64,000 nt of DNA, from positions 868,001 through 932,000 of the forward strand of contig JBLDXI010000010.1 in NCBI GenBank assembly GCA_047495785.1. Direction: 5' to 3'. Positions 29,283 through 61,309 of this stretch are shown here, one piece after another. The notes below the pieces were generated by a model that was not told where the DNA came from, ran no database searches, and was given only the letters and a program-made list of their open reading frames with translations. A program made the position numbers and the translations under genes. Source of the stretch: Lepidodermella squamata (taxonomy: Eukaryota > Animalia > Gastrotricha). Each line of letters opens with the position of its first letter. Position 1 is the first letter of the stretch.

Positions 29283-31592
29283 TCAAACTTCGCGTGCAGA
29301 TTTTGGGCTTGCGTACTTTGATCTGTAAAATCGAAGTGTAGTGATTATACGACGATTCAACTTTCGCCATGAAGTAAGCTGGTAAAGATGTACCGCGGAG
29401 CTTGCTACAGAGAGCACCAAAGCAGATATAGAAATCGCAATTTGTTGCGTTATAACTTCCTTAGCCAGGATTACCGCTATGAGAATTCCAGCTGGAAGAA
29501 GAGTCGCAATTGCAGCAATTCCAGCGCAATTCAAATTGAACTCATGCCGATACCGCGATGAAATTCCATTCTTCCGAGTTTGAAATGCAGAGACGGCAGC
29601 GATGAGGAGCAAAACCTCTAAATCAGCCGCTACAGAGCCGAGGATAGCCCAGCAATCTGCACTTCCTTCACATTTGACAACTACCTTTTCGATAACTACA
29701 TCAGCCGCCTCGTCGTAGGTCGGTGAGTTTGACTCGGCGACATAGCATATTGTTTTCCGATTCGCCACCCATGCGATGAGTAAAAATATATTCAAAAGGA
29801 AGTAGGCAAGTGCGTTCTTCATCGTCCTTGATTCTGAGTATTCGAGTGAGGAGGCTGCAGTCAACCTGATTCCAGCAGACATTTGCCGTCTGACAGTTTG
29901 CAAGCTGGAGTTTCGAGCAACCCAGACGGAAGCTTTCACTCGGGCTTTAGCGCCCATAATGCGGAAGGATGGTATGCTTGCAATCAAAGTTACTCCAACC
30001 GCCATCAGGACGTATGCTGCGTCCTCGAGAGCTGCGCTCCTCTCATCGCGTTGGATCGCGAAAAGTATGCAGGATACACTGAGGAAAGCAGACCCTAACA
30101 AGCCGGAAACTTTGCAAAACTTCAGATGCGTGGTTTGAGTTGCAATGCGACAAATTGCAAACGTCTGAATCGCAATAATTAAACCAGCTAGAATCCATAT
30201 CGACAGGGACGTTGCGAATGAGATGTTAAGAAGGATTCTCGAAGTAAGAGGTTGGTCGTAGGGAGCTACCCCTCTTATCCACTGAATCGGGGCTCTAATC
30301 TCCGTGATGAAGCCCTGAATCTCATAATCTGTTGCATTCCGAAATTTCCTATAGTGGATCGCGTCGTGAAATCCTAATTCGAGGTTCCATTGTGACAAAG
30401 CAACGATATCTCCCAATAATTGGCCGTCTTTACTATAGGACATCTGACCAACTCTCAGCCCAGTGACGTTAGTCTCTAAGACTGCCTCCCTCGCGACTTG
30501 ACTCACAATTCGCGGTTGGCTCTGGTAGTCAAGAAGGCTCAAATTGTACCTAGCCTTAAGGATGCGATCTGTCCCATCCAATGCAAAAATAGTTGCTAGT
30601 AGTCCATCTCTGTGAAGATAGGAAAACGTCGATTCGTCGCGTTTAACTCCGATTGATTTGGTTAGATACGCCTGGAACTCGGCTGCTGTATCGCCGAGAC
30701 TGGTTATTCTCGACCAATTTTCAGGGATTGCAGCATTTCCTATAAAGTAGGTTTGCCGATACTGCTCATAAAATACTTCTTTAGGGCAACCTGGTGGCGC
30801 AATCAATGTGAAGGATGAGAAGAAAGCTATGAAAACGTATCGAGGCCCCGTTATACCCTGCCGGTAAGCCTCACAGAGAAGCAACGGGACTATAGCCTGA
30901 ATTCCACTGATCGAGAGAAAAATTATTCGCTGCTTAGAATCTTTGACTCTAAGAACAGTTTCATACGTAACCTCCGAGATTAAGTCGAAATGAGGTACTT
31001 TGAACCCGTTTGAAACAGCCTTGTCATGAAGAAAGAACGCAGTTGCAAAATCAACAGCTACAGCTGGAGTTGCGAGAAGAGCAAACGACTTCCATTTTCC
31101 AATATTAGCCATGAAGTTCAAAGCAGCCGTTGCAACGTCTTGATACGTTGCAAAGGTGAGAAAAAGGTTCACGTAGATCTTTCGATCGCTCAGAAACGGA
31201 GCAGCGCAGAATGCTGAAATTGAGACAGTGTCTAAATGAGGCAAAACCCGGTTGATTGCTTTGCAGCCAGCTGAGAACGTAAGACCTGAAGTGATAGGCA
31301 ACTGATAGCCGGGTTCGCGTCTATGTTGGATGTGACTTTGTACGGCTTGGAAGCCTACTAATTCTTCCTTCCGATCTAGCTCGATGAAGTATTCGGGCAA
31401 AATATCTTGCCGTGCGTTGATTCGCTCCACGGCGTAATCAAGACCTACGTTTATTGCCTGGGCTTGCTTAGGGTCTATTCCGAACATCGGGGTTAAATGC
31501 AGCAGCTTTATCCGATGGGTTTTATTCCGCATTTCGCCATTTATCGAATTGAACAACAGAAAAGCCGCTAATTCAAGTATGATAATGTACAT
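29283..31592 (-). CDS. Divergent class C GPCR, GABA-B-like (intronless), duplicate 1
   Basis: 769-aa ORF with signal peptide, AVERINARQDILPEY, KWKSFALL, CEAYRQGITGPRYVFI, APYDQP and 7 TM segments. Confidence 0.9.
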   Translation of the reverse strand: MYIIILELAAFLLFNSINGEMRNKTHRIKLLHLTPMFGIDPKQAQAINVGLDYAVERINARQDILPEYFIELDRKEELVGFQAVQSHIQHRREPGYQLPITSGLTFSAGCKAINRVLPHLDTVSISAFCAAPFLSDRKIYVNLFLTFATYQDVATAALNFMANIGKWKSFALLATPAVAVDFATAFFLHDKAVSNGFKVPHFDLISEVTYETVLRVKDSKQRIIFLSISGIQAIVPLLLCEAYRQGITGPRYVFIAFFSSFTLIAPPGCPKEVFYEQYRQTYFIGNAAIPENWSRITSLGDTAAEFQAYLTKSIGVKRDESTFSYLHRDGLLATIFALDGTDRILKARYNLSLLDYQSQPRIVSQVAREAVLETNVTGLRVGQMSYSKDGQLLGDIVALSQWNLELGFHDAIHYRKFRNATDYEIQGFITEIRAPIQWIRGVAPYDQPLTSRILLNISFATSLSIWILAGLIIAIQTFAICRIATQTTHLKFCKVSGLLGSAFLSVSCILFAIQRDERSAALEDAAYVLMAVGVTLIASIPSFRIMGAKARVKASVWVARNSSLQTVRRQMSAGIRLTAASSLEYSESRTMKNALAYFLLNIFLLIAWVANRKTICYVAESNSPTYDEAADVVIEKVVVKCEGSADCWAILGSVAADLEVLLLIAAVSAFQTRKNGISSRYRHEFNLNCAGIAAIATLLPAGILIAVILAKEVITQQIAISISALVLSVASSAVHLYQLTSWRKLNRRIITTLRFYRSKYASPKSAREV

Positions 31593-35458: not shown

Positions 35459-37699
35459 CTACCGCTTTCGCCAGGAAGCAACCGGGTAAAGTTGTACGGC
35501 AGAGCTTGTAACCGAGAGCAGCAAAGCAGATATGGAAATTGCAATTTGTTGCGTAACAACTTCCTTAGCCAGGATTAGCGCTATGAGAATTCCGGCTGGA
35601 AGAAGAGTTGCAGTTGTAGCGATCCCAGTGCAACTCAAATTGAACTCATGACGGTACTCCTTATTCGATATGATTCCTTTTTTCCGCGTTTGATACGCAG
35701 AGAATGCAGCGATAAGTAGCAAGACCTCTGCATCAGCCGCTATGGTGCCGAGAATCGCCCAGCAATCTGCACTTCCTTCACATTTGACAACTACCTTTTC
35801 GATAAATATATCAGCCGCCTCGTCGTAAGTCGGAGAGTTTGACTCGGCGACATAGCATATTGTTTTCCGATTCGCCACCCATGCGATGAGTAAAAATATA
35901 TTCAAAAGGAAGTAGGCAAGTGCGTTCTTCATCGTCCTTGATTCTGAGTATTCGAGTGAGGAGGCTGCAGTCAACCTGATTCCAGCAGACATTTGCCGTC
36001 TGACAGTTTGCAAGCTGGAGTTTCGAGCAACCCAGACGGAAGCTTTCACTCGGGCTTTAGCGCCCATAATGCGGAAGGATGGTATGCTTGCGATTAAAGT
36101 TACTCCAACCGACATCAGGACGTATGCTGCATCCTCAAGAGCAGCGCTCCTTTCGTCACGTTCGATCGCGAATAGTATGCAGGACACATTGAGAAAAGCA
36201 GACCCTAGCAAGCCGGAAACTTTGCAAAACTTCAGATGCGTGGTACGAGCTGCGATCCAGCAAATTGCAAACGCCTGAATCACAAGAAGTAAACCAGCTG
36301 CAATCCACATCGATAGGGACGTTGCGAATGAGATGTTAAGAAGGATTCTCGAAGTAATAGGCTGGTCGTAGGGAGCTGCCCCCTTTATCCACTGAATCGG
36401 GGCTCTAATCTTTGTGATGAAGCCCTGAATCTCATAATCTGTTACATTCGGAAATTTCCTATAGTGGATCGCGTCGTGAAATCCTAATTCGGAGTTCCAC
36501 TGCGACAAGGCAACGATATCTCCCAATAATTGGCCGTCTTTACTATAGGAAATCCGGCCAACTCTCATCCCAGTGATGTTAGTCTCGAGAACAGCCTCCC
36601 TCGCGATTTGGCTCACAATTCGAGGTTGGCTTTGGTAGTCAAAAAGACTCAAATTGTACCTAGCCTTAAGGATGCGGTCAGTCCTATCCAATGCAAAAAT
36701 AGTTGTTAGCAACCCATCTCTATGGACGTAGGAAAAGGTCGATTCGCCAGGCGTGACCCCAATCGATTTAGCTAGAAACGCCTGGAAATCAGCAGCTGTA
36801 TCTCCGAGATCGGTTGTCCTCGTCAAATTTTCAGGGATTGCAGCATTTCCGATAAAGTAGGTTTGCCGATACTGCTCGTAAAATACTTCCTTCGAGCAAC
36901 CTGGTGGGACGATTAATGTGAATGATGTGTAGAGAGCTATGAAAACGTATCGGGGCCCCGTTATACCCTGTCGGTGAGCCTCGCAGAGAAACAACGGGAC
37001 TAAAGCCTGCACGCCACTGATCGAGAGAAAAATAATTCGCTGCTTAGAATCTTTGACTCTAAGAACAGTTTCATACGTAACCTCAGAGATTAAGTCGAAA
37101 TGAGGTACTTCGAAGCTGTTTGTAACAGCTTTTTCGTGGAGAAAGAACGCAGTCGTGAAATCGACAGCTACAGTTGGTGTTGCTAGAAGAGCAAACGACT
37201 TCCATTTTCCAACATTAGCCATGAAGTTCAAAGTAGCCGTTGCAACGTCTTGATACGTTGCAAGGGTTAGGAATAGGTTCTGATAGATCTTTCGATCGCT
37301 AAGAAACGGGGCAGCACAAAATGCTGAAATTGTGACTGTGTCCAAATGAGGCAAAACGCGGGCAATTGCTTTGCATCCAGCTGAGAACATGAGGCCTGAA
37401 GTGATAGGTGATTGGTAGCCGGGTTCACGCCTGTGTTGGACGAGCCTTTGCACAGCTTGGAATCCAAGCAATTCCTCCTTTCGATCTAGCTCGATAAAGT
37501 AATCGGGTAAAATATCTTGTCGCGAGTTGATTCGTTCCATAGCGTAATCAAGAGCTGCATTTATCGCCTGTACTTGCTTTGGGTCCAAACCGAACGACGG
37601 GGCAGAATACAACAGCTTTATCCGATGGGTTTTATTCCGAAACTCACCATTTATCAAATTGAAAAGTAGAAACGTCGCTAATTTGAGCATGATGTACAT
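35459..37699 (-). CDS. Divergent class C GPCR, GABA-B-like (intronless), duplicate 2
   Basis: 746-aa ORF, colinear with and highly similar to 29283-31592. The 5' flank is also duplicated (cacgaatg..tcgaatctg..tatccggaaatta). Confidence 0.9.
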   Translation of the reverse strand: MYIMLKLATFLLFNLINGEFRNKTHRIKLLYSAPSFGLDPKQVQAINAALDYAMERINSRQDILPDYFIELDRKEELLGFQAVQRLVQHRREPGYQSPITSGLMFSAGCKAIARVLPHLDTVTISAFCAAPFLSDRKIYQNLFLTLATYQDVATATLNFMANVGKWKSFALLATPTVAVDFTTAFFLHEKAVTNSFEVPHFDLISEVTYETVLRVKDSKQRIIFLSISGVQALVPLFLCEAHRQGITGPRYVFIALYTSFTLIVPPGCSKEVFYEQYRQTYFIGNAAIPENLTRTTDLGDTAADFQAFLAKSIGVTPGESTFSYVHRDGLLTTIFALDRTDRILKARYNLSLFDYQSQPRIVSQIAREAVLETNITGMRVGRISYSKDGQLLGDIVALSQWNSELGFHDAIHYRKFPNVTDYEIQGFITKIRAPIQWIKGAAPYDQPITSRILLNISFATSLSMWIAAGLLLVIQAFAICWIAARTTHLKFCKVSGLLGSAFLNVSCILFAIERDERSAALEDAAYVLMSVGVTLIASIPSFRIMGAKARVKASVWVARNSSLQTVRRQMSAGIRLTAASSLEYSESRTMKNALAYFLLNIFLLIAWVANRKTICYVAESNSPTYDEAADIFIEKVVVKCEGSADCWAILGTIAADAEVLLLIAAFSAYQTRKKGIISNKEYRHEFNLSCTGIATTATLLPAGILIALILAKEVVTQQIAISISALLLSVTSSAVQLYPVASWRKR

Positions 37700-45771: not shown

Positions 45772-48112
45772 ATGCGATCAATAATGAAGTTCTCAATCAT
45801 GACAAAAATTTTCTTAATAAAAGTCATTCACTATTTCGCCGAAAACATGATGATCCCTTCGATGTTATACGCCCTGGTGATTTTGTTGAGTATCACATCA
45901 TTAAACGCTGCGAAGCCCAAAATTATGTCAGTGCTAGTCCTTGTTCCAATGACTGGTAACGAGCCACAAAACGGGGACGGTTGTCGCTATGGCGTTCAAT
46001 TAGCATTTGATAGCGTCAATGAGAACCCTAATATCCTGCCTGAGTACCACTTAGTTGGAATATATGCGGATGAAGGCCCAGCTGGACTCTACTCCCCACG
46101 TCAAGCTATTCAGTTCCGACGTAACACGAATCTAACGTTTCAGTCCCCGCTTCTCATTGGCCCGATATTCTCAACTGGTGGAGTGGGCCTAGCGTCGATG
46201 GTTCATCAAATCGACATGGTTCAACTCGCGACTGGAGTGAATACCCCTGTAACAACCGGTAATCGAAGGCTTTACCCCAATATCTATCGAGTAAGGATAA
46301 CAGGCGAGCTGGTCGCTTTCGCCCAGATGCGATTCATCCGCGATATCGGAAAATGGAATCGCTTCGGCATTGTCACATCCGTTGTCAACAGCTTCGACTC
46401 CGATTTAGCCAATTTCCTTTATAAAACCGCAATAAATAACGGCTTCAAAATCTCCTATTTCGGAACAGTCGCCGATATTACAGAAGAAACGGTTCGGGCA
46501 ATAAAATCATCTGATACTCGAGTTCTAGTTGTGGATAGCGGTACAGCGACCTTTGTCAATAAAATGCTCTGTTTTGGTTACATGGCAGGGTTGAAGGCTC
46601 CGAGGTACGTTTACATCATTCATTCTGGTTCCTACTCCGAACCGAGTGGTCTGCCACCTAACATTACGGCGGCACCTGGATGTTCACGGGAAATGCTTCT
46701 CGAGCAATACAAAATCACGATTTGGATTGCCTGGGCTAACGGACCAGCGCGAGAGTTCACGAACTCTAGCATAGTGACATCAAGCGGGATGAATCTGATT
46801 GACTTCGAGCGAAGGTATCGAAATATAACGAATGAAAGACCGCCATTAGACTACATGCGAAGATTTCAATGCCACGATGCTGGATTGGAAACTGCGGTGA
46901 TTCTAGACGCAGCTGAACGAAAATTACTAGCGAGAAACAAATCTTTAAGCGAATTTCAGTCATCTCCAAGGGAAATCATGCTTTTGGTCAATGAATCTGC
47001 TCTTAACGTAAAATTCGTCGGCCTTCGAGTGGGGAAGTTCGAATATTCAGCGCGAGGTGAGCCTGACTCGGATTCTCAAGCTGTAATCCAATGGACGCCC
47101 GAGAAAGGCCTGAGACTACTGTATGAAATTTACGCTAGCGATCATACATCAATCTATAACTTCTCTAGTTACCATACCAACGAGGCTGAGCAGCCCTCGT
47201 GGTTCACTGAAGACGGGAAATCTCCGAGGGATGTCTCCTTGGTTATTGTAGACTTGCAGCAAATACCAGAAGGCTTTTCATGGACAATTCTAGCATTTTC
47301 GTCCATAATCGCCCTATGCCAAGCCTATGCTTCCGGTAGAAGCGAGTCGTTTCAATGCCGGCAGTTTCTGAGAGGGGATAAGAAAATGCTATTCTTCGGC
47401 TGCATTTTAGTCGATTTCTCATCTTGTCTATTCGCCTTTCCATTCTACCGCGGATCTGTTGAGTTGTGCGTTATGCAGAGAATCGCGCCGATTTTAGGAA
47501 TAGGAGCGATTTTGAGCTTTTCCATGCTTCGACTTGAGAAAGGAAGACGCGAGATGAAAACGGCTGCATCGTTACGAGCGGAATCAGGTAGAGCGCTGAC
47601 GGCAGCGTTTACTGAACCACACCTTCGCTCAAAAGCCAAACGAACTTTACCATATCAGGCACAAGTATCTGCCATATCTAGCAATGTCTCTTTTAACCAC
47701 CTGGACAAACTTTTTTTCCTTCTTATTTCCGTTTATTCGATTTTGTGGAATTACTTTGACGTTCCGACCTACAGCATCTCACTGGTTTCGGAAAGGTATA
47801 ATCCTGCCACTGATACTCAATGGATTGTTAAAGCAGAAGGATGCCGATCAGACATGGATATACCTTGGTTGATGGGCGTTGTTGTGTTCTACATTATTCT
47901 AATGCTGTGGGGTGCTTTTTCGGCATTCGTTTTGCGCCGTATTGACGAGATTGACGCCGTATGCGAGAGCGTCGATAATCAACGCCCTGATTTTGGTCGT
48001 AGCGAGTGTTATGGTGTGCTATATCTTGAATTCACCGGCTGGACAGCTGATTGCGCTATCAATAATTAGTTTGATTATTTCTGTCGGGGCTTCGCCCTCA
48101 CTAAGAACGTGA
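45772..48112 (+). CDS. Divergent class C GPCR, GABA-B-like, with frameshift near 47960 (pseudogene or indel error)
   Basis: VFT motifs (AFDSVNENPNILPEY, LIGPIFS, KWNRFGIV, SPRD) and TM1-5 are in ORF 45772-48069. TM6-7 (RASIINALILVVASVMVCYILNSPAGQLIALSIISLII) lie in the overlapping frame 47912-48112. Likely start is Met at ~45847. Confidence 0.82.
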
Positions 48113-48493
48113 GATATTGGGCTACTAAGAAAATCAATAATGTTAGTGTGATCCAATCGTTTTATTATAAAATCTTATAATGCTGAAGATAGAAATAAGG
48201 GAATACTCTATGGCTAGCCATGGAGAAATAAAATTTCCCCCCGATCTGGAACCCCGAGTGAGTTTGGCGCAGCCAAACGAATCGAGGGGTTCCAGAGGGG
48301 TTCCAGAGAATAAAACTGAAAGAAAAGGGGACTGGGTGCAGAAGAAAAACCAAATTTGTTTCCTAAAAATTGTGAAATTATCTTTGTGAATCTTTTGACG
48401 AAAATAGGGTATATATGGCCTCACTCGCCACTCTCCTCCACTCATTTGACTACATGTTAACAACATCAATGATTGTACCAAGGGTGGGAACTT

Positions 48494-48693
48494 AGTAGTA
48501 AGGATGGGAACTTTGGATCAGTAATAGCAGTACGGCGATTTTTACTATAGCCGTTTGGTATAAATATACGCAATTTGGGATCAGTAATGGCAGTACGGCG
48601 ATTTTGACTATAGCCATTTGGCATAAATATACGAGCGTTGTATCAGTAATAGCACTACGGTCATTTTTACTATAACCGTTTCACATAAATATA
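48494..48693 (+). repeat. Left TIR with three 63-bp tandem units
   Basis: Unit GATCAGTAATAGCAGTACGGCGATTTTTACTATAGCCGTTTGGTATAAATATACGCAATTTGG at 48516, 48579 and ~48641, decaying inward. Confidence 0.93.
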
Positions 48694-48859
48694 TAAGTGC
48701 GTTTTATCCGTTGCCCCATAAATGTACGCAATGTTTATGATAAAATATACAGCGGGCATACTTTTTTTCTAAAACTATTATGAGTCATGCTTTTGCATTC
48801 TTTCTGGGAATTAATTTGTAATATAAAAAATGCACACATGATAATTTATTTTTAATTTT

Positions 48860-49135
48860 TCAATCTTTGTAACAGTAATTACAATTCCAATCACCACAAT
48901 CTAGGCTGCATGCCTGATCTCTTGCTCGAGTTGCTATCATAAATCGTGATGCATCATTGATCAATTGTTCAACCTCCAATTGTGTGTTCAACATTTCGTT
49001 TATAGCTGCTGTCATTGCTCGTTGCAGATGGTCAATGCTTAGCAGTGCTTGATATAAGCGTTCACGACTAAACATAACAGAATTTATTCAAGATTTTTTA
49101 AGAAAGAACCAAACTTACATGTCTTCTGCTTCCAT
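48860..49135 (-). CDS. Small spliced orphan protein of the element (MEAEDIRERLYQALL...CSLDCGDWNCNYCYKD)
   Basis: ATG 49135; a 17-nt exon; intron GTAAG..TTTAG 49118-49068 (51 bp) joins in frame to ORF 48860-49075. The body is coiled-coil-like with a C-terminal Cys4 cluster. Minus-strand AATAAA at 48845-48850. Confidence 0.6.
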
Positions 49136-49204
49136 CAATTTTCTTAGTTTCCAAAAAGATACTTGATTAGATACAGTAATCTAAGAACTCAAGCTAGCTC
49201 ATCT

Positions 49205-49468
49205 TTTTTCCTGCTTTGTCCATTAGCTTATATAAATACACCTTACTTTCCATTAACCTTTTTTGTAAATAAACATTACTTTCTCCTATCAATCCCCCTT
49301 AACTTTAATCTAAAATATAATAAATATTTTTTACTTTGGCCATTAGCATTTATAAATACTCCTTTCTTTCCTGATATGTCCATTAACTTGTTTTGTAAAT
49401 AAACTTTACTTTCTCCTATCAATCCAACTTAACTGTAATCTAAAAAATATAAGAAACATTTTTTTACT
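49205..49468. repeat. Degenerate ~130-bp direct duplication in the divergent intergenic/promoter region of the element
   Basis: Two copies of CCATTAGC..TATAAATAC..CCATTAAC..TTTTGTAAATAAAC.TTACTTTCTCCTATCAATCC..CTTAACT.TAATCTAAAA. Confidence 0.8.
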
Positions 49469-49528
49469 CAAGGAAAATCGAATAAAAGCAAAGATTAAGG
49501 TAGGGATAGCAAGGTCAAATAAGTTGCT

Positions 49529-50332
49529 ATGATTATTGGCTATGATGAATCTTATGAAGCGATTTTCTACCGAGAAGATTTACTTTTTCCTCCGAAATCA
49601 TTAAATATATCACTAAATACCCTCTCTGGACGCATTACATTCGCTGAAGTCGCCATATTCGATTTGATTGCCAACTCGAAAGGCCAACATATTACTATCG
49701 ATCATGTTTATCTCGGCTACAAAAGAGCCGTTGCTCGTCTCTTCCCATCAACCCACGATGGCACGAATTTTCAACATTTTGCCGAATATAATTTAGCTAC
49801 CTGTGCTTCCATCGTTGGGCATGATTTATGGAAGAGCATCCTAAATGATACTACCACGCTCCTTGTTCGCCAGGATGATTTATGGTCGTCCATTTGTCAC
49901 TCAATTATTTTTACTGAAAGTGATTACCTTTTGGATGATTGCCTCGACGATAGCCCTAACCCTATTGTGTCTGGCCTGGAAGAAAGTTTCTGGTATGGCC
50001 TAACGGCACACCCTACCTACACCGAAGGCCGATATATCTACATCCAACATTTATTTTACGATTTGTTAAAAAACTTTAATGGTGTCAGCGTAAACCTGCG
50101 GCACATATTCTACCTTTTACTTCGGGCAGGTCGTAGGGTCTCAGTAGAAATGCAGAACGTCGTACCTCCACCCTATCAACACGCTCAGAAAATTCCATGG
50201 GCATCAGTCATCGATGTTCTTAATGGTCAGCAGGAAGGTGCGAATAGTAAATGGCCGGGCATCATGCAACGCTCCATCGCACTACAACCTGTCGCTACCG
50301 TCTTACCTTTCAACAACAGCTCTTCGACCTAA
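49529..50332 (+). CDS. Orphan 267-aa protein of the element
   Basis: Uninterrupted ATG-initiated ORF in AT-rich sequence with globular composition. No family recognised. Contains PPPY. Confidence 0.65.
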   Translation: MIIGYDESYEAIFYREDLLFPPKSLNISLNTLSGRITFAEVAIFDLIANSKGQHITIDHVYLGYKRAVARLFPSTHDGTNFQHFAEYNLATCASIVGHDLWKSILNDTTTLLVRQDDLWSSICHSIIFTESDYLLDDCLDDSPNPIVSGLEESFWYGLTAHPTYTEGRYIYIQHLFYDLLKNFNGVSVNLRHIFYLLLRAGRRVSVEMQNVVPPPYQHAQKIPWASVIDVLNGQQEGANSKWPGIMQRSIALQPVATVLPFNNSSST

Positions 50333-50500
50333 TTTGGTCAGTTTATTTTATTTATATAATGCCTTTGTTATTTATTCATTCCTAATCAGAAGGTTCTGGG
50401 GCTCAGCAACTCCAACCAATCACCGCGGCCGGCTTCCGTCATTCGATCATTTTTCATTTCAAACGCAAGAACTTTGAATATTATTCTTCTTACTGAATTT

Positions 50501-51612
50501 ATGGAAGCTTTCTTCAATTCATCTCCGGCTTCTCCATTGTTTTTTTCTAACAATGATTTCGTACCAATAAACCTGAATGAACCGAATACGAGTACGTTTA
50601 CCAAGGAACCTGTTGAACAAACATCAGCCTCTAGATTAGCAAAAACTGCGGTTCGTAATCAACCGAAACGCAATGCTAAACATAAAATTCAGAAAAAAGT
50701 CATAGGTACTGAGAAGAAATCAGTTGCGAAATCGGCGAAAACGCCATGCAAGGCGAAAAATAAACCAGCTGTTCCAATTACCAATCATGAGTCACGAAAG
50801 CAAGATTCTGTCGCCTCTTTTTTGGTCATGATTTGCCCTCAACCTATCGCAAAGTTCAAACAGAAACAGCTGAAATCAAGTATGTTACAAGCCTTCAATC
50901 AGCCGCATCACAGTCGACCACGATCATAAATTTGACTATATCCTATCCTGTTGATTTAAAGCTACAATCTAGCACTGAACCTTTTTTTCTATTGAAATCC
51001 CCACCATTAAATATGGAAGTAAATAATATACAATATGATATTGATTACTCTATTTCAAATATTATGGCTAAATCAAGGTCAAATTTTCTATTTAATTTAG
51101 ATAGTCTAGCCCTAATTTTACCTTGTGCAAAATATAACCCAAAAAAAATGTCGAGTGCTTTGTTCTATAAAGTACCTGCTTTTAACGCGACGTTTTTATT
51201 ATTTTCATCCGGAGCTATAATTTGTAGTGGTACCAAAACAGCCTCGAATTGTGTTACTGCTTTTGGAGTTCTTCAAGCTACACTCAGAAAAATTGTTAAT
51301 CGACGGTTGATAATCCGTGACCCAATAATTACTAATATAGTATTGTTCTACGATTTACATAAAACTGTCAATCTTAGCCTGCTAGCTTTTCAATTTCCTA
51401 AAATATGCGTTTACCAACCAGAATTTTTTCCTGGGTTGCGTATACGTGTTTTCTCCAAAGTCAGCACTAATGAAAATGAACCAAAGTTAAATGTATCTGC
51501 CACACTGTTTCACACTGGAAAAATGATTATGAGCGGCTGTTTTTCGTTATCTCTTATAAAAATAGCATTTGTTAAATTGGCGCCTTTTTTTCTGTATATC
51601 AAACAACAATAA
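50501..51612 (+). CDS. Divergent TATA-box-binding protein (TBP-like) with a basic N-terminal ORF joined by a one-base frameshift
   Basis: Both TBP repeats are present in ORF 50833-51612: SNIMA..NLDSLA..AKYNPK..TFLLFSSGAIICSG and TNIV..VNLSLLA..YQPEFFPGL..ATLFHTGKMIMSG. The Lys-rich ORF from ATG 50501 joins by +1 T at the T6 run 50818-50823. An alternative start is ATG 51013. AATAAA overlaps the stop. Confidence 0.88.
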
Positions 51613-51715
51613 AATGATTTAATGAATGAGGGAAGATTAATCGCGTGCCGTCTTTTTTAAGCTAAAATCATTATTTCTACTTTAATTAAATCTAATGAAA
51701 TAAGAATGTAAAACT

Positions 51716-52078
51716 TTAAGGGATGGGTTCTTTATATTGGCATAACTTTTCATGCCCAAAAATGAGGTCATAAGTTAGAGTAATGGGACAGCCTTTATCA
51801 GAATATTGGCATTTGTAAATCAAATTCGAGATAATGTTCGATAAAATTACAGGGGGTTTAACGAAATCTTTCCCTGTTAATGATTCGCGGCAAAGTGGAC
51901 AGCAACATACTGTTCGAGCTGAATTTTGAAAAATAGCGAGAACACATTTAGTACAAAATAAATGGCCACAGGGGCGCGTTTGAATAGGATTAAGTAGGAT
52001 AGATAAACAAATTGGACATTGCAAAGATTCAGCGTCTAAAATCTGGCTGTTCGAGAGCACAAGTCTTGTTGGATCCAT
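51716..52078 (-). CDS. RING-HC E3 ligase with TRAF/SIAH-type zinc finger (RNF41/RNF151-like architecture)
   Basis: CPICLSILLNPIQTRPCGHLFCTKC..CPLCR followed by KCQYSDKGC..FGHEKLC. The ATG is 10 nt after the dNK stop. Confidence 0.9.
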   Translation of the reverse strand: MDPTRLVLSNSQILDAESLQCPICLSILLNPIQTRPCGHLFCTKCVLAIFQNSARTVCCCPLCRESLTGKDFVKPPVILSNIISNLIYKCQYSDKGCPITLTYDLIFGHEKLCQYKEPIP

Positions 52079-52088
52079 CAATGAGGAT

Positions 52089-52853
52089 TCAAGTCTGAGA
52101 GATTACAGGCGTGATAAGAGAGGCAACATACTGAGAAGCTTGCTTTAGAACCTCAGAGGCATTCAAATTATCAGTGTCGATAACAAGCACGGGACATGGT
52201 AGGGATTTGTTTGTAGTCTCAACAGTACACATTTTTTCATGAAACTCATGTACGAGGCGTAAATAATCCAGTGATAATAGCATTTCAGAACCCCGAGCTC
52301 TAGCTACGGCTCTTTGACAAGCTATTTGGGGAGAGGAGCGCAAGTAAATAATAGCTTCAGTTTTTACAAAATTCGGCTCGAAATTATCATACAAATTCAT
52401 GAGAGCGTGATATTCGATAGAATTTATGCGCTTGGATGCATACGCACATGGGATAAAGACGTTTTTAGAACAGAAGGGCGTTCGATCATGCAGAACGATA
52501 GTATGCGCCCCGTAGATTTCAGGTTTGTGGTTAGGGGCTGAATAAAGGCCGCACATATCACTCGTGGCTACAATTTGAAAGTTGAACGCATTTTTCATCT
52601 GATAGTAATCTTTCAAAATGTTAGTTTTATCGTCATCAGTAAAGGACTCCCAACGATGAACAGGCTCGCAAATTGGCCACGCGGTATATCCCTGAAGTTT
52701 ACGGTTGAGTGAAGGTAGATTAGTGAGACCCTCGATTAAGGTTGATTTCCCGCTAAAACAAGAGACTTTAAATAGAATTCTATTCGGTGGAGTATATGAG
52801 ACTTACGCCCCAATGTTGCCGACTATGCCGAAATGGTAGACTTTAGGATGCAT
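52089..52853 (-). CDS. Deoxynucleoside kinase (dNK/TK2/dCK family), one intron
   Basis: MHPKVYHFGIVGNIGA|GKSTL: the P-loop is restored by removing intron 52753-52806 (GTAAGT..TTTTAG, 54 bp). Further motifs EPVHRW, FNFQ, LHDRTPF, IIYLRSSPQIA, lid RARGSE, LDYLRLVHEFHE. Confidence 0.93.
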
Positions 52854-53286
52854 CCAGCTTGCTTCAAGAAATATGCTAAGTGTATTCTTGAAGCATCTCT
52901 CTTAAATAGTCTGAGTGATATTTCCATAAAAGGAAAAAACAGGGAGATGTTTTGTTTGAATTGTTTTGGTAATTACACCGTAAAGGGTAAAAAATCCTAA
53001 TTGCTTTTTATTTTGATAAGTAAAAAATCGCATTGTTTAATTAGGGAGGATGTATAAGATTTATTGACATGATGTTTTCTTATTGAATTACCGACAGCAA
53101 TTAAGGAGGATGTATACAATACCAAGAATCTTTGATGAAAAGCATTAAAGCCAGCACTGAGGGGTCAACAGAGCTAAAGGCCCTAATGCATTTTTAAGGA
53201 AGATTGAATTACAAAAACAATATGCCTGAAAGGAGGTAGCCGCTCACATAAAAATCGAACCTCAGTAACAATATAAATTATAAAAT

Positions 53287-53790
53287 ATGAAGCTGAAGGT
53301 AGAGCTAACAAGTAACAAAGCTAAAGAACCGACAAAGCATACTAAAGGCTCTGTGGGTTGGGACATCTATTCAGCAGAAGAGACGACACTGCAACCTGGA
53401 ACCAGGGGACTGATTCAAACTGATATTAAAATCTGTTTACCACGAGGATATTATGGACAACTATTCAGTCGATCAGGAATGAGCATCAACCATGGAATCG
53501 ATACGGTCGCTGGAGTAATAGGTAAGAAGCAAATAATAATGAAAATTACTAATGAATATCTGTATTTTTCATGAATTAAAGACGCCGACTACACCGGAAA
53601 AATCGTAGTCTGCCTTGCAAACAACAGCAAAACACCTTACACGATTAAAATAGGCGACCGTATTACCCAGTTGGTGTGTTTAAAATATGGTCGCTTAGAA
53701 TCTGCAGTAACGGTAACGGGGCCATTGAAAAACGCTCTAGCAGCAAATTCGACCCGTGGCGATAACGGATTCGGTTCATCTGGACGTTAA
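53287..53790 (+). CDS. dut: Trimeric dUTPase, one intron
   Basis: Motifs SVGWDI (I), SRSG (II), AGVI|DADYTG (III, restored by removing intron 53522-53581, GTAAG..AAAG), GDRITQL (IV), RGDNGFGSSG (V). TAA 53788-53790; AATAAA at ~53889. Confidence 0.95.
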
Positions 53791-54056
53791 CCCCTCCAAT
53801 CCAGCCGCTACAAATCTCTGAACAAATGAATAGAAAAACTGATAAGACTTATCCCAGCTATAAATTCATTGCTTGAAACGTTAAGACTAATAAAAAGTGT
53901 TTGTGTGAATGAAAAAGGGCTCTATTGCAGCTGCACTAAAGAAGCAGTGTAAAAATGATTTGTTTAGCTCATAACAGGTGAAAAAACGAAGATTTGTTTA
54001 TTTTAGTTAGGTGAAATCATAGCAGTGGGTTAAAACGAAGGTATATTTACAAGAAG

Positions 54057-54243
54057 CGGCTATAGTACAAATCGCCGTACTGCTATTACTCATCCCCAAA
54101 TTGCGTATATTTATACCAAACGGCTATAGTAAAAATCGCCGTACTGCCATTACTGATCCCAAATTGCGTATATTTATACCAAACGGCTATAGTAAAAATC
54201 GCCGTACTGCTATTACTGATCCAAAGTTCCCATCCTTACTACT
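54057..54243 (-). repeat. Right TIR with 63-bp tandem units
   Basis: Reverse complement of the left TIR: two near-perfect units plus a partial third, ending CCTTACTACT. Confidence 0.93.
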
Positions 54244-54252
54244 GAACTTGTC

Positions 54253-56600
54253 TCACGATTTCGGCCATTTGTTAGTCCATACGGCAAAGTATGCGATCAT
54301 GAATGTTGACGTGGAGAGAAGGAGTTCACAGGCAGCCAACGCAATCAACTGATCAACCCATTTGCCTATCGAGCTAATGACGACCAATGACGCGCTGAGA
54401 ATAGTTGCCGAGTTAACAAGAGCGATTTTGATCGTAGCAATGTCTATTTCATAACCCTGTGGGCTCGAGTAGCCCCGTGTACCGTACAAAGTTACTCCAC
54501 CAAAACCGAGTAGAAGAAGATTTAAGCCGGCGAAACCAGCTGCCCAAGCGGGGAGGTAACTACTGTAACACCGCTCAGCGGTTGTTATCGTGTACATATC
54601 AAGCGAGATGTCGAATTTCACCGGGCTTTTTTCAACTATCCTGACCATCGGATCAACCACAACAAGCCATACTATGGAAATAATCCCGCAAATAGTTGAA
54701 AAGACAAGAGAAACCGTGATCGTGTGCCTAGCGTTTCGCCTTCCGGTGAACCGGGTTCTTAAATCATTCAGTTTGCTCATCTTACAGAAGTCTTTAGCCG
54801 ATAGCTGACGGTTCCTTCGTGCGTACTTCAAAATTTGATTCTGCGCAATCAAAAAAGCATTGTTTCCATTCTGAATCCCGACTGTCTTGTCGACTAATGT
54901 TATTGACCGGGCGCATAAGCTCCGGAAATGAAAGCGACACCTAACACTGGCAAGATTGCGATCACGGAACAAGTGTCATTCGTCACCATTTGCGAAATCG
55001 CTGCTGTATCGAGGAGCAAGGCCCCGGCTGCTACAACCCACGCGCTTGTAACATCGAAGTAAACACAAAGTTGTGCAGACCTATACTTCAACCAGCATGT
55101 CAGAGTAACGCAAACTAATCCAAACTTCATAGCAATGGAAATACCAGAAATCGCAACCAGCACATATGAAGTAGACGCAGATATTTTTAGCTGAACTATG
55201 AGAATATCCGATAAATCTTTTGGAGGGTTCCCTGAAGATGTCATCCATATCGGAAGCTTCGGAATTGGAAAGTAAGGTTCCATGCCAACATTTGAGAAAT
55301 TTTCTGCAGAGTTTAGTGGATTTTTTAAATAGACATTGTACAGATGTCTGACGTCCCCATTCAGTATTTGTGATATGGATATATTCTCCATGTCGACCTC
55401 TAATCTTGGCGAGAAAATGATTCGACTTACACGAACAGTAGTAACATCGAGCTCAATGGCCGAACGATTCAGAGCGGAGTAGACTAATGAAGGATTTGTC
55501 GAAAAGTCTGACAGTGTCATGTTGTAAAGGGTGTTCAAATAGTGCTCCGTTTTATTCAGAGTTGCTATTGCTGATGTTACAGCGTCCTGGCAGAAGAGGC
55601 GGGCCCCGTAGTCGGGAATTAAATATCCAGGTCTCCCAAGTTCCGTGTCCAAGCGGGTTTCAAATTCCGTAGCATTATAGCCAAGGCTACTTTTGCCGTT
55701 GAAAAGACCGCCTAGCAATTTAGTTAATCCAACCCAGAAAATGGTCGAAAGTTGCTGATACATTATTTCCGGCGGGTCACACTCTTTGGGGAACGGGACC
55801 ACCTTGTGATCCGGAAAGTAGCAATTGAAGGTTGCAATAAAGACGTAATGAGGCGCCTTAATGCCTGATTTGAAAGCCTGACACCAAAATCGCAAGCACA
55901 ATGAGTTTTGTGAAACAGCCATGGCCAAAAAGAAAATTCGAGCGTTACTAGCCTTCATTTCTGTTAAAAAGCCAGTCTTCGTGAAATCAACATCTGCGAT
56001 AACTGTAGCTACTTCGATGTCATTGTCTGCCGCAAGCTTGGTCAACATTTTTGCATAAATGTAGTCCTCTTGCCTAGCAGTGGTTATCAAGCCGATTTTT
56101 CGCCATTTCCCGACATCTTTCATGAATTTTATGACAGCCGTCGCCGTGTTTTCTATCGGCATTTGAGGTCGGAATGTTGCCATTGTTCCATGACGGGGCG
56201 TTAGAATGTTGACTGCACTACATCCGTGAGTAAATTGGAGCATGTTGTAGAATTTAGCGATGGGGGATGTCAGCTGGCAGTTAACTGTTCCACCTATAAA
56301 AAGAGGAGCGATTAGCGGGGTTCTGTCAGACCATTCCAATATCTTGACCAGATTGGCTGGAACACCCGTCCCCGCAAACCCTTTGTCTTCAACTTGCATG
56401 ACGAGTTTGTAGCGTGGCAATATTTCGGGGCGTTGGTTGGCTTCATCAGCGGCGACTTTGTATGATGCAAGGCAAGCAGTTCCATTCATGCCAGTTTGCT
56501 GGCTAGTTCTTGAGATGAAACTCACCAGTCTCAAAGGAACGTCCTTCAGGCCGTCCACTAGGATCACTGAAGCTAACAGAAAGCAAGTCAAGATATGCAT
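54253..56600 (-). CDS. Divergent class C GPCR, GABA-B-like, split by a 1-bp frameshift at ~54917
   Basis: ORF 54900-56600 has signal peptide, VFT, PPKD and TM1-3. ORF 54253-54972 continues LCARSITL..TM4-7. One extra T in GCTTATGC fuses the frames. Confidence 0.82.
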
Positions 56601-58360: not shown

Positions 58361-61309
58361 ATGATGAATAAACACTTGCTAGCTATGCTTCTCACCTGCA
58401 ATGCGATCGCCAGCTGTCAAAAACTCGTCTTGAGGAGCCTAATGCCTGAATTACTTCAGGTCAACAGCAGCACCGATGACGACAGCACTGCGCGAACACC
58501 CCTTACTCTTCTCGCTTCAATCAACTACGGCGGAGGTCCTACGCTGTCGCTAGGCCCGCTTTGCACGGAAGCGATGCGATTCGCTCTGGAAAACACCCGC
58601 AGGTCCAATCAAATGCTTCGTAACTATGATTTGCGAATTTCTTTGTATGATGATCAGGTGACATAATCACTAAGCTCAGAATGCATCACTTCAACATTCC
58701 ATTTTTTAGTTCTTTACCTCCAGCGGGGTATATTATATAACCAGCACGTTACGAGATATTACAGAAGGCCGGAATAAAGAGAGCATTCTGCCTCTGCATT
58801 TGGGAAATGTCGCAGCGATTTACGTTGGACAATTTCTGCAGCATTTCGACTTCTTCACAATCAACCACGTCCAGGCTGTCCACCTCTCGCGAGTCCTTTC
58901 TTATGATAGAGACTATCCACCTTCAGCCGTTAATATATTCATCCCGCATGAATACGTCAATCCTTCATTGGTCGAATTTTTAAATAGGATGAATTGGCGC
59001 AAACTGGCGCTTCTTTCAACATCGAATTTCTTGTGGACTCGGGTAAATTTAGAAATGTTCATCTAATGGAAATTTATTGCCCTCTTTTGCAGTGGGATCT
59101 TTCGCTAATAAATCAAATGTATCTCAGGAATATGACTCTGTTAGGCTACGTCAAAATTCCGGTACCTCTTGGCACTACAAGCCCAACAGCACTTGACATC
59201 GAAAAAACTGTTCAGGATTTAGCTCAATTTGAAGAGGCTAGAATATTTATTATTCACGCGACTGCCGCCGTAGAAACGAGTTGCTTCCTCTACAAGTATG
59301 GGATATACGGCCCCGGCTACGTCATTCTGATAAACGAGCTTGGATTTTATGGCACTGATGCTCCGATTCCCTACGCGTGGTGCACAAGGGAAATGTTAGT
59401 CGAGGTCCTCGGAAGCGCTCTATTTTTCGGTCAGATGCCTGCGAGTGAGATACAAGGCCCTGACAACATCAAATCTTCCGGCGGCATGACAGCTGATAAG
59501 CTTGATGATTATCTACGCAGTAAAATCGAAGCACCCGAAACCTTTCCGACCTGGTGGCTGCGAAGCTCGTGCTACGACATGGCCCTTTTCGCCATTCATG
59601 TTTTGAATGCCACCGAAACCAAACTCAATGCCAGAAATCAGACTCTGAATGATTGGTTGACAAACGGCGATTATTTCCAACAAAATGGCAGCTACATCTT
59701 CTCAATGATAAAGGACAGCATTTTCAGCGTGGATATGCAGGGTTTTGTGAGCAGACTTCAGTTCAACAAGTCGACAGGCTTCAACACGCCCGGAAACTAT
59801 CCTTTAGCCATAACTCAGCATCAAAAGGTGGGGGGAAAGATTATTCCGGTCGTTGGAGCTACTTTGAATGCGACAGATGTTTCTGTCAAATTCGGACCCG
59901 GTAAATTTGTTTGGCGCACTTGGAACAATGTGCCTCCTCGAGATGAAACATTAGTCATTGCGGTGAAAGAAGCAGATTCTGTTACAGCTTTTGCCACACT
60001 TGCAGGTAATTTTTGAAAATTCGTGAATCTCAAGCTACATTTCAAACAAACTTTCAGCTCTCGCAATACTGCTGTGCGTCCTATCTTCATTTTTATTAAT
60101 ATGGACTCTTAAAAAGAGGCTGAGGCTCTCTGACGGGGAAAGCAGCTGGACCTCTTGTCTTTTACTGCTCGGTGACGTCTTTCTATCATGCCAACCATTC
60201 ATAATGGGCTATAAATCCGAGGCAAATATTCATAACAATTGCATGGCATCCTATTTTATATTGCTCAGCGGATTCTCCATTGTCCTGTCAACGCATTTAG
60301 TTGAACTCTTGCATGTCTACGAAGCGTTCAAATCTGACTCAATGCGAGAATCGCGACCTTCAGGATCGCAACTAAAAAACAGAAGTCACCCGATCAGAAA
60401 GCGGGTACCTAAGGCCCTGCCAATCTCGAGCGAATTACCATCGAAAAAGGCTTCGATTATCATAATCGGCACATTTATTTACAACTGTGGGCTACTTGCT
60501 ATCTGGTTTGCCGTCGAGCCACTGATTACTGCTGTGAAGGAGCTGCGATTCGAAAAATCCCGGACCGACATTAGTTTGTCGTATAGCTATTACGATTTTC
60601 AATGCGACATGGGAACCTGGGTGCTTAGTGGTAACTTTCATTTTCACGATCTCATAATCATTTTGATTGCTCTGCCGAACACTATCGCTATGCTAACGGC
60701 GATTGCCCTTTCTCTAATGCTTCAAAATGTGAGTATGAACAGATAGTATGAACTGTTTTACTATCATTATTCCTGCTATATTAACAGGCAGCCGTTAATT
60801 CTCTACGACAGTCCACTTATAGAACGATAATTGCGACTGCGGCTGGTTGCGCTATAGCCATGATATTTGCTGATCAATGGAAAAATTTGCAGGTAGTTAT
60901 TTCTGCGACTTGCTTGGTTATCGCCGTTAGCAATTTGGCGACGCGGTTTCTCTTTGCTGGCAAACAAATTACCTGTTGCTACAGCAGCTTCTTCACATCG
61001 GAAGGACACAATTCATGCCCCGTAAACATTGAATTGTTGTATTCATGCAAGTATTGCTATCAGGTTATTAACTACTTCGTCACTGCGATCGCTAACAATT
61101 CATTAACATCATTAAGGATTTCGAATTTTCCGGCACCACATTCGGCACCTGTTCTGCACCGATTTTCGGCATACATTAGGCACTTTTGGCACCTGTTCTG
61201 CACCGATTCCCTAAAGATTACGCACGGCGTTCTGCAAACCTGTTACGCACTTTCCGCACGCACAATCATCAGGGCATTCGGCACCCTCATTCCGCACATT
61301 CGGCACTGA
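58361..61309 (+). CDS. Divergent class C GPCR, GABA-B-like, intron-containing
   Basis: Signal peptide, ALENTRRSNQMLRNYDLRI..DDQ, NWRKLALL, CFLYKYGIYGPGYVIL, VPPRD, and TM exons 60060-60730 and 60790-60960. The 3' end is uncertain because the ORF runs into repeat sequence after ~61110. Confidence 0.8.

Follow-up and report, generated by a model that had tools for sequence, protein, structure and literature searches.

We describe here an integrated element of 5,750 bp in the genome of the gastrotrich Lepidodermella squamata, which has the ends of a Maverick (also called Polinton) and whose recognisable genes are all of the accessory type. It lies in a stretch of 64,000 nucleotides (GenBank assembly GCA_047495785.1, contig JBLDXI010000010.1, positions 868,001 to 932,000 of the forward strand), hereafter the window, to which all coordinates refer. 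The anatomy of the element shows that it was integrated by a staggered-cut integrase. We propose that it is probably a non-autonomous, Maverick-type deletion derivative, whereas an initial annotation, made from the sequence alone, had preferred a satellite dependent on a helper, or an accessory segment of a multipartite Polinton-like virus.

Termini and mode of integration

Read from the window sequence, the element spans positions 48494 to 54243, begins with AGTAGT and ends with ACTACT. It is enclosed by two copies of GAACTT, at 48488-48493 on the left and 54244-54249 on the right, which directly abut its terminal inverted repeats (TIRs); a 6-bp match at such a fixed boundary has a probability of 1/4096 by chance. 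In the left TIR (48494-48695, forward strand), three 63-bp subrepeats follow a 15-nt tip that carries the (AGT)2 end motif; in the right TIR (54031-54243, reverse strand), three 63-bp subrepeats precede a 15-nt tip that ends in (ACT)2. Starting from the tips, the first 112 nt of the arms are identical; mismatches follow at positions 113, 123 and 129, and beyond these the arms are about 80% alike up to roughly 205 nt. The window holds just two occurrences of the element's 44-nt tip, one on each strand, the number expected being zero. Since the bases just outside the TIRs are non-complementary and the TIR cannot be extended, the element boundary is exact. The termini, the 112-nt perfect TIR and the GAACTT duplication reported by the initial annotation are all present as it had described them. 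An assembly artefact or a chimeric join is scarcely credible here, as misassembly does not produce a perfect duplication, precise TIR boundaries and an interior that is gene-dense and coherent.

Both a 6-bp target-site duplication and TIRs with a short tandem end motif, here (AGT)2//(ACT)2, are features of Mavericks. The end motif of these elements is either (AGT)2//(ACT)2 or (AG)3//(CT)3; among vertebrate Mavericks the former is found most often, accompanied by a perfect 6-bp duplication, and TIR lengths range from 46 to 1,447 bp (PMC8097293). The end repeats have been interpreted as serving jumping-back in protein-primed replication (PMC8097293), and duplications of 6 bp are typical of the rve-type integrase of the Maverick/Polinton class (PMC12220804). 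The other eukaryotic DNA transposons whose integrase is Gypsy-like, the Ginger elements, have ends of the form TGTNR and duplications of 4 to 5 bp (PMC2836005). The end motif and the 6-bp duplication thus place the element with Mavericks/Polintons, in agreement with the initial annotation, and, together with the TIRs of about 200 bp, they establish its entry through a staggered-cut DDE-integrase reaction.

Gene content of the element

Six open reading frames (ORFs) of the element are well supported, encoding a TATA-binding protein (TBP), a RING protein, a deoxynucleoside kinase (dNK), a dUTPase and two proteins without assignment (ORF267 and ORF142), and a seventh (ORF71) is doubtful. The six tightly packed genes initially annotated stand as a number, with the correction that the 71-aa ORF lies within chance and that upstream of TBP there is a basic ORF of 142 aa. 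Neither Pfam nor PHROG revealed genes or remnants of a polymerase, an integrase, an ATPase, a protease or a capsid protein on the element ORFs, the capsid negative being subject to the caveat that capsid proteins can diverge past detection and that two ORFs are without assignment. For the protein-primed family B polymerase (pPolB), there was no PF03175 match on the element ORFs and tblastn with the pPolB pieces of a contig introduced below (L001) found nothing in the element; the sole match of this search in the window was marginal (E 0.06) and fell within a host zinc-finger gene. An rve integrase gave no Pfam match on the element ORFs, and the unassigned non-coding stretches are all of 453 bp or less. 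No Pfam match to a helicase or polymerase domain, which is a trait of transpovirons, was obtained in the element either. By these searches (Pfam on the element ORFs, pPolB tblastn on the window), the earlier statement that core Maverick genes and fragments of them are not recognisable holds, and so do, by Pfam, the identities of TBP, RING, dNK and dUTPase and the view of the cargo as intact and exclusively of accessory type. The element is also shorter, at 5,750 bp, than intact vertebrate Mavericks (12.7-24.6 kb). As every Polinton, by definition, carries genes for a polymerase and an integrase (PMC5499653), it is not a Polinton proper and is better described as a non-autonomous element with Maverick ends.

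The TBP gene (51013-51612, forward strand) encodes the core only, in 199 aa, with two repeats recognised by Pfam (TBP, E 2.7e-24) and matches down to 3.8e-19 among PDB sequences. An AF2 model built from a 58-sequence alignment reached a pLDDT of 93.4 and a pTM of 0.85, and a fold search aligned it with eukaryotic TBP-DNA crystal complexes at a TM of 0.81-0.83 and an rmsd of 1.6-2.3 A. Pfam, the model and the fold search all agree on the two-repeat saddle fold of the family. The protein retains all invariant and near-invariant columns of our alignment A1 and three of the four DNA-kinking phenylalanines (F64, F139 and F166 in the same alignment); at the fourth position, in the first repeat, it has a methionine where the aligned Pyrococcus TBP has phenylalanine. 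An exhaustive HMMER search of 1.84 billion representatives gave no match below 1e-30 and an identity of at most 37%, the top matches being a plant hypothetical protein, then archaeal and archaeal-virus TBPs. The best-scoring relative is a 376-aa partial hypothetical protein of Penstemon davidsonii (KAK4492228.1) with two TBP cores. Two contigs from JGI and ENA, L005 (76.8 kb) and L006 (45.4 kb), are virus-like and dense in small ORFs, encode a TBP, a family B polymerase, NrdD, a PD-(D/E)XK nuclease and TrmB-like regulators, and look like an archaeal virus.

A word-index search with the TBP returned a single match, at 30% identity, on the ENA contig L001 (ERZ26273096, 7,578 bp). On this contig a core-only TBP gene stands tail-to-tail with a pPolB gene (PF03175, E 3.6e-35), the latter read in several ORF pieces that reflect introns or breaks, and L001 has the appearance of a Polinton-like element fragment from a eukaryote. 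We dropped the notion of a recognisable clade of Maverick TBPs in view of the HMMER matches and since the L001 TBP is no nearer to that of the element than other TBPs are. A giant-virus origin of the TBP is likewise not supported, because the giant-virus TBPs of BFVD (TM of at most 0.75, identity of at most 21%) are remoter in both structure and sequence than cellular TBPs.

Convergent with TBP, the RING gene (51716-52078, reverse strand) encodes a 120-aa protein in which a C3HC4 RING is followed by a zinc finger of the SIAH/TRAF type. Pfam matched RING families at around 4e-7 and Sina_ZnF weakly; the best PDB match, over residues 16-116, was the RING and zinc finger of SIAH1 (4.6e-10), and the RING and first zinc finger of TRAF6 also align. 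The protein has the SIAH/TRAF-type architecture and is a predicted E3 ligase. On the same strand, the dNK gene (52089-52853) consists of two exons, with a spliced product of 236 aa, and matches Pfam dNK at 7.9e-19. Its 54-nt GT-AG intron (52753-52806) uses the sole in-frame acceptor, which completes the P-loop. In PDB, the protein matched an insect multisubstrate dNK (2.4e-13) in an alignment that covers the DR[ST]-type and the Arg-rich lid stretches, so that P-loop, DR[ST]-type motif and Arg-rich lid are all present. A word-index search with the dNK found a single match, at 29% identity, to a cockroach's own multi-exon dNK gene. The RING ATG is 10 nt downstream of the stop codon of dNK, and a pyrimidine-rich acceptor has its end at 52095; joined to this acceptor, the dNK exon-1 donor gives a stop-free reading frame of 141 aa in frame with RING. 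As a hypothesis only, RING may be expressed through this splice of dNK exon 1 to 52095, the alternatives being a trans-splice acceptor or an internal promoter.

The dUTPase gene (53287-53790, forward strand) likewise has two exons, with a spliced product of 147 aa (Pfam dUTPase 9.1e-15; PHROG dUTPase on both exons). Removal of its 60-nt GT-AG intron (53522-53581) leaves a coding sequence free of internal stops, full length for a trimeric dUTPase and with the motif stretches in order. The two exons are colinear on PDB chain 2okd, which we take to be the vaccinia dUTPase, covering residues 15-85 and then 90-145, the gap of five residues being filled by the exon ends; this chain is the top PDB match of exon 1, at about 46% identity. 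The initial annotation had to be corrected for these two genes, each of which is interrupted by an intron.

The element differs from its surroundings in composition: its GC content is 36.9% against 42.8% in the rest of the window, and its genes have a GC3 of 0.25-0.42 against 0.43-0.51 in nine host genes, so that the cargo is compositionally foreign to the host. This bears on the idea of a cut-and-paste transposon of another superfamily, or of a Pack-type gene-capturing element, that would carry host genes between ends resembling those of Mavericks by coincidence. Spliceosomal introns in two of the cargo genes, as found in genomic captures, and the absence of Maverick proteins by Pfam would suit such an origin. 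We nevertheless find it improbable: the exact (AGT)2//(ACT)2 motif with its 6-bp duplication is specific and differs from the ends of Ginger, and the cargo genes are complete rather than fragments, unlike host genes in composition and remote from their cellular homologues, given the identity values of dNK, matched only in an insect, and of TBP.

As to the remaining ORFs, length was judged by comparing stop-free runs with those of 500 shuffles, the maximum of which was 173 codons. ORF267 (267 aa; 49529-50332, forward strand) lies in a run of 269 stop-free codons and ORF142 (50501-50929, forward strand; ORF151 if counted from a TTG start), which is basic and Lys-rich, in one of 189; both exceed all shuffles and, judged by length, are real. 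ORF267 had no match in Pfam, PHROG or PDB and no homologue by word-index search or IMG/VR scan; its single-sequence AF2 model (pLDDT 38) was unusable. ORF142 had no significant match in Pfam, PHROG or PDB. A splice joining ORF142 to TBP was considered and rejected, there being no donor/acceptor pair like those of the two verified introns; in the absence of a convincing intron, the two are treated as separate genes. ORF71 (71 aa, with a Cys-rich C-terminus; 48860-49075, reverse strand) is of unremarkable length, the shuffles giving 3.7 ORFs of 75 aa or more apiece, had no significant family or structure match and is a doubtful gene.

Two long ORFs that surpass every shuffle and resemble no family, structure or homologue could in principle make the element autonomous, with ORF267 or ORF142 as a novel integrase, recombinase or replication protein. 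We judge this very improbable. The 6-bp duplication and the Maverick ends point to an rve-type integrase, which Pfam would detect and which is absent; a protein of 267 aa that lacks any DDE-type match would hardly serve in its place, and the secondary structure predicted for ORF267, at low confidence, is mostly helical.

The non-coding parts of the element are rich in TATA-like boxes. Each of the six TIR subrepeats (48509-48695 and 54031-54220) contains one, three of them TATAAATA, two CATAAATA and one the reduced form ATAAATA. In the whole window TATAAATA occurs 11 times, and six of these sites fall in the element: besides those in the TIRs, two are in a duplicated block and one is between ORF267 and ORF142. 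The duplicated block, two copies of a 130-bp repeat (49214-49464), occupies the intergenic region from which ORF71 and ORF267 diverge and, with its TATAAATA-type boxes, is a putative promoter region. The boxes of the TIR subrepeats may be candidate binding sites for the element's own TBP. Polyadenylation signals (AATAAA or ATTAAA) are found downstream of ORF71, TBP, RING and dUTPase, and not of ORF267 or dNK. In the 103-nt spacer between the convergent TBP and RING genes (51613-51715), a palindromic AT-rich stretch provides ATTAAA on both strands.

Probable origin by deletion and its alternatives

The layout of known Mavericks provides a simple model for the origin of the element. The core of vertebrate Mavericks has accessory regions on either side, beside both TIRs, and the modules face the centre (PMC8097293). 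Nematode Mavericks have a TIR-proximal cargo region of 2-5 kb with intron-bearing genes, while their core genes are intronless (bioRxiv 10.1101/2022.07.12.499685). The genes of our element also face the centre from both sides. With published accessory regions adjoining the TIRs and introns known in nematode cargo, one deletion of the core predicts the layout of the element, and the most likely origin would be a single internal deletion of the core modules in which both TIR-proximal accessory regions were kept. Since the element encodes neither integrase nor polymerase, both would have come from a full-length relative with matching ends, the integrase for its insertion and the polymerase as well, if the trinucleotide end repeat serves jumping-back in protein-primed replication. 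In the parental virus-like element, dNK and dUTPase would supply and clean the dNTP pool, TBP would steer transcription to TATA-rich promoters, and RING would act on host proteins via ubiquitin.

The insertion looks young, given TIRs that are perfect over 112 nt and a perfect duplication, and we concur on this point with the initial annotation, which had called the integration recent. It follows that intact genes and motifs are to be expected in any case, which makes the intactness of the catalytic motifs, put forward earlier against a deletion derivative, a weak argument: so young a copy would be intact regardless. The earlier preference for a satellite or second segment over a deletion derivative is similarly unsupported, because deletion of the core from the known Maverick layout gives the same arrangement.

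Several observations weigh against a deletion origin. No broken or truncated gene is seen in the element that would mark a deletion junction, which is mild evidence against it, and the compact spacer between the convergent TBP and RING genes looks like a native arrangement. That all recognisable genes are intact would also fit selection on an evolved dependent element. The TBPs of the element and of L001, 30% identical, form no tight group, and ORF267 and ORF142 could hide unrecognised functions. Finally, the literature on accessory regions concerns vertebrates and nematodes (PMC8097293; bioRxiv 10.1101/2022.07.12.499685), and the introns of the animal host are short here.

The chief alternative is that the element represents a maintained lineage rather than a one-off deletion product: it would have evolved as a helper-dependent satellite of a Maverick-like virus, or as the second segment of its genome, and would share the termini of its helper and contribute TBP, dNK, dUTPase and RING functions. 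Its recognisable genes, all intact and with no truncated remnants seen, its compact and symmetric layout with a convergent 3' region in common, and the repeated TATA-like boxes in the TIRs, which match the element's own TBP, are consistent with this. There is also a precedent in transpovirons, small capsid-less dependants bounded by TIRs in the Polinton-centred class (PMC5499653). We nevertheless hold such a lineage to be unlikely: recency alone explains the intactness, a single deletion of the core predicts this layout, the literature examined yielded no multipartite Maverick or Polinton, and neither the window nor IMG/VR nor the JGI metagenomes gave a second copy, partner or free form. In its most specific form, it would make the element a maintained helper-dependent mini-genome of an animal Maverick-like virus, without capsid or polymerase, sharing the helper's termini, providing the four functions encoded by its recognisable genes and with its own TBP binding the TATA-like boxes of the TIRs; this we consider quite unlikely.

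The element can be compared with several known systems. With the vertebrate Mavericks of Barreat & Katzourakis 2021 (PMC8097293), the element shares the end motif, the perfect 6-bp duplication, a TIR length within their range, genes facing the centre from both sides and accessory genes adjoining the TIRs; it differs from these 12.7-24.6 kb elements by its 5.75 kb, the lack of pPolB, integrase, ATPase, protease and capsid genes, and the introns in two of its genes. With the TIR-proximal cargo that nematode Mavericks carry (Widen et al., bioRxiv 10.1101/2022.07.12.499685), it shares a size of a few kb, intron-bearing non-core genes by a TIR and a deviant composition. That cargo, however, is carried on a complete element, is GC-richer and derives from the host (proteases, kinases), whereas here the cargo stands alone, is AT-richer than the host and has virus-typical functions.

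Among dependent elements, transpovirons (linear dsDNA of about 7 kb, dependent on mimiviruses) are likewise small, capsid-less, bounded by TIRs and reliant on another element, and they are thought to stem from gene loss within the Polinton-centred class (PMC5499653). They have an SF1 helicase fused to an inactivated pPolB and a giant virus as helper (PMC5499653); our element lacks such a fusion and has no sequence relationship with them. The initial annotation had drawn an analogy with bipartite bidnaviruses, which have a pPolB-related ancestry and whose segments share terminal repeats. Their genome is ssDNA, however, and its segments are packaged separately, and no partner segment is in evidence for the element. 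A further parallel is offered by internally deleted non-autonomous DNA transposons such as Ds, which keep the ends of Ac, have lost its enzyme and are moved by the partner's proteins. Unlike the element, such derivatives rarely retain several complete, unrelated and apparently functional genes. Tlr elements were formerly termed non-autonomous Polintons, and Repbase reportedly lists non-autonomous Polinton entries. In the open-access literature, we found no description of a Maverick-ended element carrying only accessory genes.

As for the cargo, midsize linear dsDNA viruses that have an adintovirus-like PolB or other replicases count TBP, TRAF-like and dUTPase genes among their accessory genes (PMC8502044). 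These MELD viruses (Starrett et al. 2021, PMC8502044) have complete genomes of 10-50 kb with replicase and virion genes, and their likeness to the element is one of gene function. The functional palette of the element thus has a precedent among adintovirus-related viruses, with no sequence-level family established. The proteins of the element had no close relatives in the databases searched, exact look-ups retrieved no entry for ORF267 or for a host receptor beside the element, scans of IMG/VR with TBP, ORF267 and dNK yielded no relative, and DNA patterns of the TIR had no match in IMG/VR or the JGI metagenomes.

Insertion site, host surroundings and significance

A class C receptor gene of the host (ANF_receptor and 7tm_3; 54253-56600, reverse strand) has its stop codon 3 nt from the right copy of the duplication, which puts the insertion in the 3' untranslated region of this gene. 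Its 7TM domain is complete, the 7tm_3 match reaching profile position 249 of 251; the gene is read in two overlapping frames. On the other side, the host flank that includes the left duplication copy (48475-48493, forward strand) resembles the element tip, with 16 of 19 positions identical to 48495-48513, and this likeness stands in register with the target-site duplication. The next-best 19-mers among the 57,980 of host sequence in the window reach at most 15 of 19 against the first 80 nt of the TIR. Our best guess is that the DDE enzyme may prefer targets resembling its own ends, by analogy with bacterial IS30 and IS911, whose DDE enzymes have such a preference. When the element and its flanks were searched by BLAST against the rest of the window, neither a second copy nor a paralogous flank was found.

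The window is animal DNA. The receptor gene beside the insertion belongs to an array of class C receptors (ANF_receptor and 7tm_3), mostly read as single ORFs (4192-6453, 29283-31592, 35459-37699, 45772-48069, 54253-56600 and 60204-60746), whose mutual identity is only about 25%. Ankyrin/Sushi proteins, a Kringle protein, an ENPP, a UGT and a Shaker-type K+ channel are also encoded in the window. Within the channel gene (Ion_trans ORFs at 6676-7502), a potassium-channel RNA editing signal was matched (Rfam RF00485; 6727-6840, reverse strand; 61 bits, E 7.6e-10).

The life cycle of Mavericks, which are virus-like elements, has yet to be observed, and the element described here is a clean and young example. 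As this copy bears the Maverick end signature and carries accessory genes only, the ends alone appear sufficient for integration, with the proteins provided in trans. It also shows that Maverick-type elements in this animal lineage carry TBP, dNK, dUTPase and RING genes, a set otherwise typical of large DNA viruses. Two features offer leads for further work, namely the TATA-like boxes of the TIR subrepeats beside an element-encoded TBP, and the insertion beside a tip-like sequence. Should the element prove to belong to a maintained mini-genome lineage, it would be the first member of this class in animals to be described as a satellite or second segment.

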